A DNA stretch of 63,920 bases, counting the filler, from Dicyema japonicum (lineage: Eukaryota > Animalia > Dicyemida): assembly GCA_011109175.1 (NCBI GenBank). It is 6 parts of 6 records of this genome, joined end to end, with 100 filler letters (N's around TTAATTAATTAA, not from the genome) between each part and the next. Parts side by side here need not be neighbours in the genome. Positions count along the whole stretch, not along the records: positions 36,401 to 45,858 come from RDEW01000118.1; 5 more parts are not named here. One strand, given 5' to 3'. Shown in pieces: positions 36,301 through 45,860 of this stretch. The notes below the pieces were generated by a model that saw only the letters and a list, made by a program, of their open reading frames with translations, was not told the DNA's origin and searched no databases. Every line of letters begins with the position of its first letter. Positions within the stretch are counted from its first letter, which is position 1. The translations under genes and the position numbers were made by a program.

Positions 36301-36839
36301 NNNNNNNNNNNNNNNNNNNNNNNNNNNNNNNNNNNNNNNNNNNNTTAATTAATTAANNNNNNNNNNNNNNNNNNNNNNNNNNNNNNNNNNNNNNNNNNNN
36401 ATAGTGTCCGGGCTGATGAGACCAGATTTATCATATGAAAACATTAACAAACACTCATTCTTGTTTCAATAGAAACAAATTAGAGAGATGTTAAAATCCT
36501 CAAGGAAAAGACCCCGAAAATAAGGCTGCTTTATAGGGATTCCGAGAAAATATTTACGTAATGTCATTATTATTGAGATATTTATAAGTTATAACATACA
36601 TACGACAAGATTAAATTAAGTAAGTCAAAATAATAATAATATTTAAAATATCAAAAGAAGTATTAAAATATGTGATATAAACTACAAATGACTCAAATAT
36701 CGATTATTTAAAGGTATAATCAAATTCTTAATTGATACAAACAGTATCATCTATTTTTATGCATTTTTTGAAAATTTTCGCCTGCACTCTCTATTGCTTA
36801 TGATGTTTGATGATCTAATTCACTTTCTATACGAGAAAA

Positions 36840-36990
36840 TCCCAAATTTTGACCCTAAAACTAACTTTAGTTCTAACCCAAATTCGAATACAAACCCTAA
36901 TCATATTTTGACTTTAAACCCTAACATCAACCAAACCTAATTTAAACCCTAACATAAACCTTTATTCTAACTCTAATTCTAACCCTAGCT
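36840..36990. repeat. Degenerate telomere-like (TAACCC-related) repeat tract
   Basis: Several aaaccctaa, aacctaa, aactctaa and ttctaa units at irregular spacing. Confidence 0.5.
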
Positions 36991-37039
36991 GTAGATCAAA
37001 TGTTATTAAAAATAAACAAGTGTCACAAGACTAATTTGA

Positions 37040-37660
37040 CCCACTGTATGATCCCGACCTTAACACCAATCTTTCCCTAACGCAAACTCCAACTGATTAT
37101 TAAAAATTTTAATAAAAGGAAATTATTATCAGAAAATCTTTTTTTTATCCGGGATTTTGCGACCTTTTTTGTTTCTTCGGTGGAAACGTTCTTAACAAGA
37201 ACAAAATGCAGATGTTCNTAATTTGACCCACTGTATGATCCCGACCTTAACACCAATCTTTTCCTAACGCAAACTCCAACTGATTATTAAAAATTTTAAT
37301 AAAAGGAAATTATTATCAGAAAATCTTTTTTTTATCCGGGGTTCTGCGACCTTTTTTGTTTCTTCGATGGAAACGCCCTTAACAAAAACAAAATGTAGAT
37401 GTTCTTCAATAACGACATATTGCTCTTTTTCAAAAAAACTTTCCAATTCATGTTTTTTTGTATTCACGCTGTTATAAAAATCAGATTTAATAAAAACAGT
37501 ATCGCCGATTTTTATATGCGTTTTTTGGANAAACTTTCCGATGCATGTTTTTTTGTTTTCACGTTGTTATCAAAATCAGATTTGATAAAAACAGTATCGC
37601 CGATTTTTATATGCGTTTTTTGGAAATTTGTGTTGGCGTTTTCTTTTACTTTTTTTTGGT
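37040..37660 (-). mobile_element. Possible integrase C-terminal remnant with direct duplications
   Basis: THIKIGDTVFIKSDFDNNVKTKKH..SFFEKEQYVVIEE occurs twice, and about 180 bp is duplicated across the n near 37219. Confidence 0.3.
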
Positions 37661-37998
37661 AATTTTTAAAATACTCCGATGTTTAATGTTCTGATTCAAT
37701 TTCAGTACTTTCAATAGGACAAATTCTTTGAATTTCATCCTCCGATAAATACTCAGTTCTTTCGACTGATGATTCGATTTCTTTATTATCAAACAAAGAA
37801 ACACTATTGAATCCCNATAATCACTGATAATATTTTTGAACAAATCCAATTTAGCATATTAAGTATACTAGGTCCTTTTTTACATGTATGGGCCATTTCA
37901 AGCCTAAGAGAGTCCAGAGTTGCCTTTTAGGAATTCAGAGCATTCTTGGTAAATTTAAATTTGGTACTTAATAAAAAACTTAAATAAGTAAGTAATTA

Positions 37999-38830
37999 CA
38001 GTAAAATCTCTCGAATCCGCTGCTTCTCGAATCCGCCGTTTCTCGAATCCGCTTGTTTTAGTCAAAAATATTGAATTTCCTATGGAAGATTCTCGAATCC
38101 GCCTGTTTCTCGAATCCGCCGATTTTTTGGCGAAATTGATGAGAAACTGGTAGCGTGGATTAACCTAATGGAGTCAAAGGGAGCAATTTTGTCTGATTCA
38201 ATAATCATTTCAAAGGCTCTTAAATTTGGAGAAAATGATGGAGCATTTAAAGAAGCCGTGGATGGCTAGAAAAGTTCAAGACCCGAAATGGTCTTAAGCT
38301 AAGAAAACATCACGGCGATATGGGATCAATTAATCATAATGAAAAATCCATTACTGATTTCAACGACATAATCAGTTTAAAAATTAAACAATATGGATTG
38401 GATAACGTCTATAATGCTGATGAAACCGGTGTTTTTTTACAAGGAAATTCCTTCGAAAAGTGTATGTACAAAATCAAGGCCTGGAATAAAGTTGTCGAAG
38501 GATCGATTTTCATTATTATGTGCAAATTGTTCCGGTGATAGGAAGATTCAAAAATCCTAGATGTTTCAAAAATTTTAACATCGGAAATTATGTTACGTAC
38601 ACATATTCGAACAAAGCATGGATGAACACATGATCACAAAAATATTATGAAAATTGGCGAACTGCTTAGAAAATCAAATAAAAAAGATAATTTTTTATAT
38701 TTATTATTTATATAAATGAAATTTTAAAGATTGTATAGATTTTAAAGATTGTAACTTTCAATTAGAATTGATTATTTAAAATTTAAATTGTCTCTCGAAT
38801 CCGCCGATTTTTTGGCCGGTCCCAAAATCG
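37999..38830 (+). mobile_element. Tigger/pogo (CENP-B-like) DNA transposon remnant
   Basis: TA|CAGTAAAATCTCTCGAATCCGC left end with repeated ctcgaatccgc motifs. EIDEKLVAWI..GWLEKFKTRNGL HTH, VYNADETG and SNKAWMN motifs. No right TIR seen. Confidence 0.85.
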
Positions 38831-39196
38831 GCACTATAGTGTATTTTTCGTGCAATATTCTAGTCAAATGGTCCATTACAAGTACGAATATTTTCGGTGA
38901 CAGTGCGTACCTTGCAATGTCCACTTCATTATTTGAATTGTTCCAAATCTTCAATTTTTTGAAGATGAAATACGGAGATTACTTGCAAAATGAGTTGAGG
39001 TTTTTAAAATTTTAATATACACAAAAAGGAAATTAATATAATTAGGAAATATTATATTTCCAAAAATGTCTGTTCTTCCTTTTTAACTTCCGAAACACTT
39101 TTCTATTCAAAAATTTGTTCTAAAAACAGACTCGATATTCTAAACCTAATTTTCTTTTTTAAATAAACAATAAAATCCAAACAATTTTTTAAAAAT

Positions 39197-39754
39197 TCAC
39201 CAATCTAATCTGTTGTTTCGTATAGAATCGACTAATAAGTAAAGATCCCGCGCAGATCTTATTCGGGACCACGAGTCATAATTTTCAAAGTCAAAGTCCA
39301 GAATGATTCTGGCCATTTCCTTCAATGACCTCTTCTCGCTGCCAGATTTTTGCATCATTTCAATGAGTTCCGGACACAAATATGTGTCGAAACAGTCGAA
39401 ATATATGATGTTAAATTCTAAACAAGCGAAAAATTGGCCAAGGTCGTGACCAATTATGAGTGTGTCCTACAACTATAGACCAAACATATCATTACTTTCA
39501 GGATATCGAATATAATTGATCTCGCGCTACGAAATGAGATCGAGTTATCCAAATCATAGGGATGGACTCCTCCATATTGAGTCCGATAATTGGTGACTGA
39601 TTGGTTCGGTGTGATAAAGCTTTCAAAGAGGATAGTTAAATCATGATTGACAATAAGACAGTGCGCTAAAATGTATTTCAGGAAACAAAGAGATACCTAG
39701 TGCAGATTTCTTTGGATATACCTCCACGAATTTCCAAGAGACAGAAACGTACAT
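39197..39754 (-). CDS. REXO4/ISG20-like DEDDh exonuclease homolog, catalytic residues absent (165 aa)
   Basis: MYVSVSWKFVEVYPKKSAL|AHCLIVNHDL..ITPNQSVTNYRTQYGGVHPYDL..ILK|DTLIIGHDLGQF..RSLKEMARIIL..ENYDSWSRIRSARDLY. GT-AG introns at 39666..39696 and 39467..39495; open frame throughout. Confidence 0.8.
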
Positions 39755-39899
39755 CGATAAATTAGATAAATTGAATTTAACTTCCTTTTTAATACTATTT
39801 CTGTGCAGGTTAACCAATTAAAAAGGTATAATAGGTTAAAATATAAATTTTTAAAATAATAAATTAAATTATTAATTTTAAAATCCTAATACGTTTCGT

Positions 39900-40650
39900 A
39901 TTCAATAGTTTTTGAGGAATTTACAACTCCGCGAGTTTGCTTCTTTTTCGACGGGCACGCAAAGATTGAACTGAGAAACGCATTCAATTCCTGAGAAGAG
40001 ATTGTATCCTCGAAGCCTGCGCGAAAGAAATTCCACGTATCGTGCCGATCGTCTCCCTGGCCTACCGGCCAAATGCTGTGCAACCAGCTTACTAGAAGAT
40101 TACGCTGAATGTATGAAGACGTGCGTTTACCTTGGTGGCATCGGTCTGATTCCCACCTGACACAGCCTACGGAGCGTAGTTCTCCTTAGTGCATTTTTCC
40201 AGAGAAATGACTGACACTGTTCTCTCCCATTACAATGAGCAGAGAATATCATTTCGTATCGATGAAAGATTTTTTCATNACAAGGAGTTCGGTGAGACTA
40301 CGAACTGTTCGCAAAAGAGTCACAAAAATATATTGGGAGGTTTGTCCTCAGTTAAATCGGTCTCTGAATATACGGACTCGTACATTGAGCAGAAAATATT
40401 GAATATTCCTCATAAACTACGACAGGAACTTGTGGATATTGAGCTCTACAACCAAATCAGGTGAATATACGTCACACATCAAAAGGAATCAGATAATGCA
40501 AGAACTCCGTGCGGAGATGGAAACTCCTGATGCTGAGTATGTGAGCGAGACGATGGACAAATATTGGAGATCTGATTTTGTATCAAAACGTCCGCAATCT
40601 CAACATGTTTTATTTGTTGGCGTATCGTTAGCCGCACGACTACAAGTGTG
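39900..40650 (+). mobile_element. CRE-clade RT remnant
   Basis: KIELRNAFNS*..DCILEACAKEIPRIVPIVSLAY matches the KLDIRNAFNSIRR..IPEISRMVRLSY region of the 49-51 kb element. Confidence 0.65.
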
Positions 40651-41206
40651 AATCCGGGTATTCATATTGGGTGAATAAACTGAATAAAACAAACGTCATC
40701 TAACCTGCTTTATGGTAGGGACAAACAAAATTTGGGGAATTGGGGAATCCTTGGAAGATAAACTGTTCCTTTTCCAAGCCCATTGGCGAGTACTGGGATG
40801 AGGAACTTCCTCACAGAATACCCAGATGAGCGCATTCCTTGTATACTAACTATTAATACACTTTTAATGTTGACCACAAACATATATTCGTAGAATAACG
40901 CACTCATTAAGGAATTCCCATTGTGCAAGTTGCCTAATAAGTGGTCTCGCCATAATAGGTGCTCTTCTATTATTTTAGAATTTAATTTCGCGAATGACAA
41001 GTTTTCTACCCTCATAGCTTCAGCACTCACATTTCTGTTGTTTTAGTTTCACCACTGTATCAGATGTCAGAGGGTTTTTACTGATTCTTCATTTATGCGA
41101 AATAGAAACCATAGGGTTTCTGAAATTAAATTTTCATCTTAAAAATTATACATTCATTAATTCATTATAAATTGAAAAATATAATTACAATTCATTTAGT
41201 AAACTC

Positions 41207-41283
41207 ATGTGTGCTCTCGCGGAGGTGATAAGAGAAACGTGTCTAATTTATGAGGATTTTCCGAAAAAGGGAGTACAGTTTAT
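41207..41283 (+). pseudogene. Possible APRT N-terminal fragment truncated by a hAT element
   Basis: MCALAEVIRETCLIYEDFPKKGVQF resembles the APRT IRxxPDFPxxGxxF motif and runs directly into hAT subterminal sequence. Confidence 0.3.
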
Positions 41284-42946
41284 GCCGGATCCGGCCCGCG
41301 ACAACATTTTATCCGGCCCGCGCACTATTTCGAGATATTCAATTAATACCTTAATAATTAACTCAAATAAAAACTTAAATTTTTGTTTCTTTCTCATTTT
41401 TATTTTTAAGATTTGTTAGTAAAGCATGAAATATTATTTTTAATTAATAAGTGTTTAATTAATGGAAAATCTAATAGATTATTGCCAAGGTGGCTGTGCC
41501 ATGCTTATTTTATGTTGTGCTTTATGTATTTCTTTTTTCCCATATTATTATATTATTGAATCTGATTTAGAAGGAGTGCTTCGTTAGCAAGTTTCATTTA
41601 TTGACTATTTTATTTGAAATTTTCTGATTGTCATTATTTATTCTATTCCTTCAAAATCACTTTCTTTTAACTTATTTTACATCTTGTTGAACATCCCTTT
41701 TCCTTTTCCTCTGGGTGATTTTTTCTCGATTTAAGATAAAGAATTTGTCCAAAATGGTAAAAAAATAGATTTTATAAACTCCGAAGTGAGATTGATATTT
41801 TTTTTAACCAGTAAAAATAACTATTATCCGGAATTATCAGATCTTGCTTGGCTATCAAAATTATCATTTTTGGTTGATGTTACAACTCACATGAATGAGC
41901 TAAATCTGAAATTACAAGGAAAGGAAAACTTACTTGCTTGGCTATCAAAATTATCATTTTTGGTTGATGTTACAACTCACATACATGAGCTAAATCTGAA
42001 ATTACAAGGAAAGGAAAACTTACTTTGTGATATCTACAGGATAATTAAAGCAAACAGTAATGAGATCGACATTACTTTCCAAATTGGAATTATCAAAGAA
42101 TTAAAACATCATTTTTTACATAAATTTTCTGAACTTGACAAAATTGAAAGCGATATAATTTTGTTCGAAAATCCATTTTCTTGTAATGTTGAGAATGTTC
42201 AACATGAATTACAATTAGAAGTTATTGACTTACAATCAACTCGCTGAGTTCTACGAATATCTCAAGGATGATGAGTTTCCGAGACTAAAGAATTTTGCGA
42301 TAAAGATGATTTCTATATTTGGCACAACTTACCAATGTGAGCAAACGTTTTCGAGGATGGAATATGTTAAATTCTTTCACAACACGGGAATTATTTCGCA
42401 ACACGGGAAGCCCTTTAGTGATGGGATGTATATCAAAAATTGCATTATTGAAGCAGTTAATTGTTTGTGCCCACAAAATTCTTCCTTATTTGATAAAATA
42501 AGTTTGTCGGCGAATTCTGTATCACGGAGAACTGAAGAGCTTGGAAAATATATATTTACAAATTTGTGAAAATACAAGTAATATTTCATAGCTCTCATTA
42601 AAATTTTTGTTTACTTTATTTTTGTTTAAATTAGTTTTTATTGTACAAAAACACACTNCAAAATTCTTCCTTATTTGATGGAATAAGTATGTCGGCGAAT
42701 TCTGTATCACGGAGAACGGAAGAGCTTGGAAAATATATATTTACAAATTTGTGAAAATACAAATAATATTTCATAGCTCTCATTAACATTTTGGTTTACT
42801 TTATTTTTGTTTAAATTAGTTTTTATTGTAAAAAAACACACTTATGAATTTCTAGTAAAATTATAATCCTATGCACGTGCTCCGGCCCGCGTTCATTGTT
42901 GTGGGGTCAATCCGGCCCGCGAGTGCAAAAAGTTTGGTGACCCCTG
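41283..42946 (+). mobile_element. hAT (Buster/SPIN/GTF2IRD2-like) transposon remnant, rearranged
   Basis: WLSKLSFLVDVTTHMNELNLKLQGKE (twice), FENPF, FGTTYQCEQTFSRM and HGKPFSDGMYIKNC. Right TIR ...aaaagtttggtgacccctg ends at 42946; ccggcccgc subterminal motifs at both ends; left TIR missing. Confidence 0.9.
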
Positions 42947-43540
42947 TTTTAGAGAAATAAAATACGTCACAAAAATTCAGATACACAATATAATGAGGAT
43001 GAACTTTATTAGGAGTAGATGAGTGTATTCATCTAAATATGCATCTATTAATACTGCGGCAAAAATATCCGAATATATCAAATGTAAAGAAAACATAGAT
43101 ATATGCAGTTGATCAAAAACTAGCCATAAATATCAAAATTTAAAGATTTTTTAACTCAAATAAAAAGTTTAGAGAATAAATAAAGGATATATTTACATCT
43201 TACTTGTATTTTCTGATGGAAAAAAATTAGTATAGTCCATTTATTTATAAATGTATATTGACAAACTAAGCATATGTGTAATGGCATATTCATGCCCAAA
43301 TAATGAACAAAAAAAGGAAATTTTGTAGGGAAACCACGAGTGAAGTAATGTAGGATCTCCATTCCAAATTTCATCACGATTGGACAGTTTAATAGAAAGA
43401 AATTTGCTATTTCCGAACATTAATAATAACTGAAACATTGAATAAATCATTTAGCGAAATAGTACTGGAATCTCATTGGCTGCTTATACCACAAAGAGCC
43501 GGCTGTATGAGATACAGTACATTGTTTGCTTTTGATTATT

Positions 43541-44240
43541 ATGGTTTCCGCTGTTAAGCAAAATAATGATTCTGTTCTACTTGTAAAAAAGGTTTCAAAG
43601 AAATCGCATCCCTCATATCTCAATATGATACTTGCCGCCATGAAATCTTTTTCAGACGACAAAGCGGCAACTCGTGCCAATGTGCTTGCATATATAAAAA
43701 ACAATTATAACGTTGGGGATAATGACAAGAGAGTCAATTTTTCTATCAAACGTGTTATTAATTCTTCAATTGAGAGTGGACAGTTTTTCAGAATATCTGT
43801 ACGGTCTATCTTTTGAGTTTGTAAGGGTGTCGGTGCCACTGGATCATTTTGCTTCCCAAACTCTCTTCTTGCTAAAAAAGCTGAGCGGAAGGAAAAGAGA
43901 CTCCAATCGACCCATAATAAAGCTGAAAGGTTGTCAAATTGTTGAATTCTTTAGCGAAGAAACAGCAACTAAAACAAAAAAAGTGGCGGCTTCTAAAAAA
44001 GTTGCAGGCACAGAAGTTAAGGCTGTCAAATCCAAGAAAGTTGTGTCTAAAAAAAAGCCAGTTGTCAATACCGATAAATCGCCATTTAAAGTATCCAAAG
44101 AAAAGAAAGACGTGCCTAAAAAGAAACCAGTCGTAAAGACGACTGGTGTAAACAAGGCCCTCTCTAAAAAGGCGACTTCTGTAAAGAAGCCAGTCACAAA
44201 GAAAACTGTAAAGAAACGTATATCTAAGGCCAATAGTTGA
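43541..44240 (+). CDS. H1: Linker histone H1, intron-containing
   Basis: SHPSYLNMILAAMKSFSDDKAATRANVLAYIKNNY..RIS|GVGATGSF globular domain plus a K/A/V/P-rich tail. GT-AG introns at 43799..43825 and 43930..43954. Confidence 0.92.
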
Positions 44241-45319
44241 CTTTACTTATATTTAATTGTTTTTTTCGTTAAAACATTGATTATTTCCCTTTAAGATCAT
44301 GATAATTTTTATTCAATTACTCATAAAATCCTCTAATTAGTCTACTTGTCTGTTGGTTATTTCTTTTTCTTACATAAGGACCTAACAGTCTGTTTTTAAT
44401 TTTGTTCATGATACGTATAATATTTGACCACAAAGTTTTGTTTTAATTTTGGTTGATTTATATTTGTCGATATAATTGAAGGAATGTTTATGAGTCCATT
44501 TGTTCTTACGGTCCTCCTACGTCTACTCTATTTGAGATGGAACTAGGTTAGGGACTATACATACAGCTTAATTATGAGCTTACTCACTCTCGATAGCTTC
44601 TATGACGCATCCGACGAGAGCTCGCCCCTCATCAACAGCCGTATCGTAATTATTTACTTCATATTAATTATCTTGACGTTTTCCATGTTTTTTTACAATA
44701 AACTCCACCTATCTTTAAACAATAAGCGGCTCTCTCCGCTGAAATTTTACCTTCCATCATTCTCGATATTTAGTAAAAGATTCATTTGGACTCAATTTAT
44801 TGAAAATACATTTTTCCCGATGTAATTTAAGAACATCTTAAAACATATTCATGGGAATTAATCTGTTTATTAAGCTTGAAAATGTTTTTCGCGCACAATT
44901 AGTATTGATTAATCTCCAGAATCCTGATGTGCCAATGACAGTTGATTATTGATAATGTTACCATGTGTCTGTAATTAGATTCGTCCGTTTAAAAAATTGT
45001 CTGTTACATGCCGTGTTACTGTGATTATCTAATTTTGTACTTTATAATCTTGATTTGTTAAATCGGATTGTGCTGCAATTGACATTTATTTCTACATAGA
45101 CATGACAATGCTTTGCTCCATAGGCCATTGTTCTCTTTGGATAAACATATAGAAAAAGTAGATAGGTCAACATTTGATTTTTCCATACATTTAAACATAA
45201 CCGAGTGTAGTGATTTACAGATGATTCGTTTAAGCAAAAGCATCCTCTGAGTGCCCTCAAATGACTGAATGTCCAGGTTTCCCCTCCCCTGACAACTGCA
45301 TATTTGGAGGCAAGAAATC

Positions 45320-45860
45320 CTGCGATGGTGGTTAAGTGCCAATTTTTTGTTTTTATCACTCGTAGAATACTCAGCCTTTGAAGACAGATAGTCAATTGTT
45401 TTTCCAATTTTTTAATAAACTGGAAGAGCACAATTTTTGGAAAATTCGACCTAAAGGTAGGTCTAATCGGGCAACCGAGGGGTGCAATCAATTCAGGACG
45501 TCAAATAAGGTCGGGAAAAAGCAAGAACGAGCAGATTTAATGCTTCTAACCTGNCGATGGTGGTTAAGTGCCAATTTTTTGTTTTTATCACTCGTAGAAT
45601 ACTCAGCCTTTGAAGACAGATAGTCAATTGTTTTTCCAATTTTTTAATAAACTGGAAGACCACAATTTTTGGAAAATTCGACCTAAAGGTAGGTTTAATC
45701 GGGCAACCAAGGGCTGCAATGATTTCAGGAAATCAAATAAGTTCAGGAAAAACCAAGAACGAGCAGATTTAATTCTTCTAACATATATATTTCGATACCT
45801 GTCTGGGATGTACTTGACCACAATTTTGGAAAATTCGACCTAAAGGTAGGTTTAATCGNN
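45320..45860. repeat. Diverged tandem repeat of about 230 bp (two full units plus a partial) next to an n and a gap
   Basis: gatggtggttaagtgccaattttttg...ttttggaaaattcgacctaaaggtagg is repeated. Confidence 0.8.

Follow-up and report, generated by a model that had tools for sequence, protein, structure and literature searches.

What is encoded by a gene that has the complete open reading frame and the conserved scaffold of an ISG20/REXO4-type exonuclease and none of the five DEDDh catalytic residues: a nuclease that works in some other way, a protein that selection keeps for a purpose other than cutting, or nothing at all? The gene in question belongs to the dicyemid Dicyema japonicum (assembly GCA_011109175.1) and lies in the piece from RDEW01000118.1 (positions 36401-45858) of the window, that is, the whole stretch of 63,920 nucleotides that was analysed, in which six parts of six records are joined by 100 filler letters between each part and the next. 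The answer that we favor, with somewhat better than even confidence, is that an intact, lineage-specific gene of the ISG20/REXO4/AEN branch has come to encode a pseudo-exonuclease and is selectively maintained, most likely because its product binds rather than cuts.

A three-frame reading of positions 39100-39900 places the gene on the minus strand from 39754 to 39197, with three exons that are separated by two GT..AG introns (Table 1); when joined from the window sequence, the exons give a spliced open reading frame of 498 nt, that is, 165 codons (165 aa) without an internal stop. The initial annotation had described an intact, complete reading frame with two canonical introns, and a base-by-base derivation returned the same model with identical coordinates. 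Excision of intron 1 creates the segment SALAHC, which aligns without a gap to SALARC of the family; at the junction of intron 2, the match of exon 2 stops at residue 83 of the lamprey homologue described below and that of exon 3 picks up at residue 84. Removal of exactly 31 and 29 nt thus restores colinearity without any gap, a fit that is not to be expected from chance frameshifts in a pseudogene. An alternative donor at 39721 was ruled out, as it has no in-frame acceptor that continues the homology. The stop codon follows the last helix by ~10 residues, and all 165 residues are covered by the exonuclease domain; the description of the protein as a nuclease domain only holds as far as the first ATG, and no upstream exon is evident. 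A ciliate origin, which short introns and TGA stops might suggest, was set aside: all seven glutamine codons in this gene and the neighboring histone gene are CAA or CAG, the histone has a globular domain, and the piece abounds in hAT-type remnants in place of densely packed genes.

Table 1. Positions (in the window) of the exons, introns and replaced catalytic residues of the ISG20-like gene and of the neighboring linker histone gene.
Feature	Positions	Strand	Description
Exon 1	39754-39697	minus	58 nt; ATG 39754-39752; degenerate ExoI motif
Intron 1	39696-39666	minus	31 nt; GTA...TAG; phase 1
Exon 2	39665-39496	minus	170 nt; best-conserved section; VTNYRT with R47 (codon 39585-39583)
Intron 2	39495-39467	minus	29 nt; GTA...TAG; phase 0
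Exon 3	39466-39197	minus	270 nt including TGA 39199-39197; GHDLGQF, FDT, SLK, LY
ExoI D replaced by S6	codon 39739-39737	minus	exon 1
ExoI E replaced by K8	codon 39733-39731	minus	exon 1
ExoII D replaced by F88	codon 39433-39431	minus	exon 3; gapless alignment around GH....F
ExoIII H replaced by Y139	codon 39280-39278	minus	exon 3
ExoIII D replaced by R144	codon 39265-39263	minus	exon 3; conserved Ser between Y139 and R144 and downstream DLY..V as anchors
Linker histone H1 gene	43541-44240	plus	complete; 215 aa; Pfam Linker_histone E 2e-12
H1 intron	43799-43825	plus	27 nt; GT..AG
H1 intron	43930-43954	plus	25 nt; GT..AG

Intron lengths of 25-31 nt are usual for this genome, because the linker histone H1 gene that lies 4 kb from the ISG20-like gene is complete only after introns of 27 and 25 nt are removed; it then shows the typical GVGATGSF continuation and the globular domain. 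All four introns in the piece fall within 25-31 nt, and three of the four start with GTA. For the myxobolid myxozoan Henneguya salminicola, a median intron of 27 bp, a GC content of 29.1% and a 5' splice signal that is cut down to GTa have been published; for D. japonicum, the published values are a mean intron of 38 bp, a GC content of 36.7%, 49% repeats and 1.24% heterozygosity. The introns described here match these published ultra-short-intron animals having a GTa 5' signal. For the published D. japonicum genome, one paired-end library was combined with four mate-pair libraries, and SSPACE and GapCloser served for the assembly; the piece has a GC content of 0.33, is rich in repeats and contains joins marked by a single N. 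Together with the intron sizes and the pattern of sequencing runs, these features would fit D. japonicum better than a myxobolid such as H. salminicola.

That the homology of the protein to this family goes beyond chance is seen in exon 2 (56 aa), which in the PDB matches ISG20 (1WLJ; E 1.1e-5) and ISG20L2 (7YW5; E 4.3e-5) and also Arabidopsis SDN1 and PAN2. Exon 3 (89 aa) by itself has no significant match in the PDB or Pfam; in a HMMER search of 1.84 billion representatives, its sole real match is a lamprey ISG20-like protein (P0002; E 2.4e-5), the other match being a low-complexity repeat. Scanned singly against Pfam RNase_T (PF00929), exon 2 scores 12.7 bits (gathering cut-off 24) and exon 3 has no match; in the ESM Atlas, a search by features with exon 3 as query returned an RNase_T-containing cluster as nearest (score 0.91), a result that is no more than consistent with the family. 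In pairwise comparison with the lamprey protein, exon 2 covers residues 29-83 and exon 3 residues 86-167, so the two are colinear with nothing missing at the splice junctions; the joined model matches the same protein with 93 bits (E 1e-28; local phmmer, small database). With the joined model, ISG20-type proteins of lamprey, shark and platypus score highest, and the identity to vertebrate ISG20-type proteins is 34-37%; a mollusc REXO4 found no tblastn match anywhere in the piece.

In a maximum-likelihood tree the gene groups with seven ISG20-type rows (support 98/95), and its end branch is 6.65 changes per column long (median 0.48); placement with the other 28 rows, that is, those of ISG20L2, AEN or REXO4 type, is not rejected (AU p 0.22) in this tree, which is drawn without homologues from cnidarians, flatworms or the gene's own phylum. 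Judged from its sequence, the gene is best assigned to the ISG20/REXO4/AEN branch of the DEDDh exonucleases, with homology across the whole domain. This is the family that had been proposed at the outset, together with a retained scaffold (VTNYRT, GH, SLK and LY), and each of these elements is present.

To locate the catalytic residues, we aligned the joined model, in a local run, to 127 proteins of the ISG20, ISG20L2, AEN and REXO4 groups that had been retrieved together with the lamprey protein. At the five DEDDh positions, 100% of these 127 family members have D, E, D, H and D; the dicyemid protein retains none of the five. The alignment agrees with the replacements that had been read by the initial annotation (D>S, E>K, D>F, H>Y and D>R), and the register of the catalytic columns is secure because these are flanked by the anchors V10, G82-H83, F89, L92, S141 and L151 with V155. 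Nor can the D-x-E of ExoI be restored by any shift of register, because E11 is the sole acidic residue among the first 27.

According to a review of ISG20, one Mn ion is coordinated by Asp11, Glu13 and Asp154 and the second by Asp11 and, via water, by Asp94; the phosphate is in contact with His149 and the ribose 2'-OH with Arg53. In the dicyemid gene, Asp11, Glu13, Asp94, His149 and Asp154 correspond to S, K, F, Y and R, and Met14 has become Phe; Arg53 is kept as R47 of YRT, and the GHD of ExoII is also kept. Because the metal-binding carboxylates and the histidine of the ISG20 mechanism are all replaced, hydrolysis by the two-metal-ion mechanism of the family is excluded. Since the gene, as read here, fails the three motifs by which the family is defined, we file it as a putative dead derivative and not as an exonuclease.

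A dead derivative could be a pseudogene, so we calculated what neutral change would be expected to leave. In an exact codon-level calculation (HKY model) that starts from the coding sequence with D, E, D, H and D restored, the probability that all five are replaced and that no stop appears in 165 codons is at most 8e-5 at the AT-biased composition of the flanks and at most 4e-4 with uniform composition, whatever the divergence; the avoidance of indels and the retention of the eight splice-site bases (the latter with a probability of 0.04-0.2 at the relevant divergences) come on top of these values. The changes are also unevenly distributed. Conservation in the family reaches 95% or more in 53 columns; of these, the gene keeps 3 of the 19 inside the three Exo motifs vs 20 of the 34 outside them (Fisher p 0.0035). 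Another 95% threshold, applied to hydrophobicity, selects 51 family columns, of which 45 are still hydrophobic, a retention that is significant only at a divergence of at least 0.4. The codon-position composition is that of a gene (GC3 0.43 and G1 0.25 vs a GC content of 0.28 in the flanks). This non-uniform pattern, seen at the level of sequence, would indicate an active site released from constraint on a scaffold that is still constrained, that is, the signature of a pseudo-enzyme, and it argues against a neutral pseudogene.

The sequence itself is reproduced by the Illumina-derived Logan contigs of the source sample, among which no stop or frameshift variant was seen over the gene. At position 39365, the window has G and all Logan contigs have C, a synonymous difference in L110; at position 39330, roughly one third of the depth carries C>T, which turns R122 into K.

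The alternative that survives best, which we consider possible although doubtful, is that the locus is a silent relic, that is, an unexpressed pseudogene with a frame that has stayed open by luck or that was silenced only recently, after a long phase as a selected dead enzyme. No RNA run that contains the stretch was found, even though transcriptome runs exist for D. japonicum; this is weak evidence, since many runs fall outside the search. The runs that do contain it comprise a large library and three small ones from a single 2019 sample and a 2017 run with the same species label, and the Logan contigs pass through both introns without splicing, as genomic DNA would. Relatives were likewise not found: there is no orthologue or paralogue of the dead gene among 1.84 billion representatives or 5.8 billion clusters; a word search with exon 3, with a length window of 49-156 aa that leaves out proteins of 165 aa, gave no candidates; a profile built from the lamprey protein and the window exons retrieved active family members only, with none among the rows retrieved having lost the catalytic residues; and tblastn with six family proteins detected no second copy in the whole piece.

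A silent relic would also agree with the very long end branch, with a region that is full of transposon remnants and repeats and with published descriptions of such parasite genomes as very fast-evolving, with much gene loss. It is opposed by the neutral calculation, in which a decaying 165-codon frame persists at no more than 8e-5 to 4e-4, and less with indels and splice sites included, by the concentration of the decay in the active-site motifs and by values of GC3 and G1 that are far from the composition of the flanks. Most of the weight that we leave to this alternative is due to the scenario of recent silencing after long selection.

If, as we prefer, the gene is a selectively maintained pseudo-exonuclease, its history and function might be pictured as follows. 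The RNase_T-type scaffold would have been retained, since all of the blocks of secondary structure align and the hydrophobic core, YRT and GHD are kept; the exchange of the four metal-binding carboxylates and the general-base histidine for S, K, F, Y and R would have ended two-metal-ion hydrolysis; and purifying selection would hold the frame, both pairs of splice sites and the core while the active site is left to drift. The protein would then be expected to be expressed, to fold and to bind some ligand, which may be an RNA 3' end in the remnant of the nucleotide pocket or a protein partner of active enzymes.

The calculated charge bears on this choice. The dead protein, with a pI of 5.31 and a net charge of -5, is more acidic than every one of the 127 family domains, for which the medians are a pI of 8.43 and a net charge of +3; the acidic pI weakens the RNA-binding half of the mechanism, and we regard a role as protein partner or competitor as about as likely as the binding of RNA ends. 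The metal-free binding of nucleic acids that had been proposed for this protein can draw on the basic residues K8 and R144 at the former metal sites and on the retention of R47; as a proposal of generic RNA binding, it is disfavored by the acidity of the protein.

A more specific version, to which we assign a very small probability, is that the dead protein is a non-cutting decoy or 3'-end cap that shields RNAs from DEDDh exonucleases or titrates their partners, possibly those of the host, and that it descends from an ISG20-type lineage that is otherwise vertebrate, either by horizontal transfer or as an ancient lineage that was lost elsewhere. A slighter chance still is given to horizontal transfer as such, that is, the acquisition by the parasite of an ISG20-type, domain-only gene that was then kept as a non-cutting decoy. 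The sole real library match of exon 3, the ranking of lamprey, shark and platypus proteins at the top of the scores with no tblastn match for mollusc REXO4, the starred branch that joins the gene to the seven ISG20-type rows and the domain-only architecture shared with ISG20 all point in this direction. However, the identity is merely 34-37%, the alternative placement with the other 28 rows has an AU p of 0.22, and attraction of a long branch to the fastest rows is to be expected in a tree that lacks cnidarian, flatworm and other early-branching homologues; moreover, the introns are ultra-short in the style of the host genome, the composition is AT-rich, and the host of a dicyemid is a cephalopod, not a vertebrate.

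Least probable of all is a still-active nuclease that uses other residues, that is, a relocated acidic set (D84 of GHD, D101, D103 and D140 are close to where the active site was) or a DEDDy-like tyrosine (Y139 occupies the place of the tyrosine-type general base), because the positions of ISG20 Asp11, Glu13, Asp94 and Asp154 hold S, K, F and R, the first strand has no D-x-E in any register, the residue four past Y139 is S143 and not Asp, so the Y-x3-D motif of DEDDy enzymes is absent, and a single change of D94, the standard means of inactivating ISG20 in published studies, already disables that enzyme.

With the pseudo-exonuclease reading as the basis, the protein can be compared with systems that are already described. 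Human ISG20 (1WLJ) and the vertebrate ISG20-like proteins likewise consist of a single RNase_T/DEDDh domain of ~165-190 aa without extra domains; vertebrate ISG20 and the dicyemid gene have in common the arginine equivalent to Arg53 (in YRT), the GHD of ExoII, FDT, SLK and the final LY. They differ in the five catalytic positions, in a 4-residue deletion before ExoIII in the dicyemid gene and in its product being acidic, not basic. ISG20L2 (7YW5), AEN and REXO4 (Rex4) belong to the same domain family; unlike the dicyemid gene, they have N-terminal extensions, which bring their total length to ~270-380 aa, and DEDDh is intact in every one of them.

By analogy, the nearest functional counterparts may be Drosophila Exuperantia and PXL of PML-1, which also have a DEDD-type fold with unconserved catalytic residues and for which the binding of nucleic acids without cleavage has been demonstrated. 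Both are EXO-SAM modules that are structurally nearest to TREX1/Plex9, with ~10-15% identity to active enzymes. The dicyemid gene differs in having neither a SAM-like part nor the two-subdomain EXO-SAM architecture, and at the level of sequence it is a clear ISG20/REXO4 member. Maelstrom and EXD1 are further DEDD-fold pseudo-exonucleases.

Exuperantia and PML PXL are examples of the DEDD fold being put to new use as a binding module. For the ISG20/REXO4/AEN branch, which serves in antiviral RNA decay, rRNA 3'-end maturation and apoptosis, we found no described case of a pseudo-enzyme; the statement of the initial annotation that no described dead paralog of this subfamily is known agrees with this, as absence of evidence only, and the described DEDD pseudo-exonucleases that we found belong to other branches. 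A protein of this branch that is dead and selectively maintained would be a natural separation-of-function variant, that is, one with binding but without cutting, and would hint at a rewiring of RNA processing in extremely reduced parasites. As a single gene in a single genome, the dead ISG20-like gene is at present to be treated as a lead, not a discovery.

Several features of the surrounding piece deserve description in their own right. Just downstream of the ISG20-like gene, positions 38017-38835 are a high-copy repeat (Logan depth 3,000-26,000 vs 141 in the single-copy right flank) that carries repeated TCTCGAATCCGCCG-type subterminal motifs; it includes an open reading frame at 38320-38538 that, by eye only, is reminiscent of a pogo/Tigger-type transposase and has no Pfam match. 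On the plus strand, positions 41786-42569 contain rearranged remnants of a hAT-family transposase, for which the Dimer_Tnp_hAT match is weak (E 0.004); within them, a 90-nt segment is duplicated in tandem at 41843-42022. Upstream of the ISG20-like gene, the GC content is raised to 0.40-0.44 at 39900-41300; no recognisable protein was detected there in any frame, and the open reading frames have no Pfam match. Rfam and tRNA scans of the piece 36401-45858 were empty.

Over 39191-40022, that is, the gene and the upstream 270 nt, the unitig depth is 356-418 (vs 141-223 in the flanks), which amounts to 2.5-3 times the depth of the right flank, with unitig breaks at ~39185, 39365, 39658 and 40005 and with five contigs overlapping position 39365; the raised depth reflects either 2-3 near-identical copies or heterozygous bubbles. 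Finally, the piece contains three near-tandem duplications (37032-37404, 42474-42842 and 45323-45782) of 184-228 nt with 95-96% identity and a spacing of 1-4 nt, with single N's nearby; these are probably assembly artefacts, that is, heterozygous contig ends that were butted together by gap closing around a single N.
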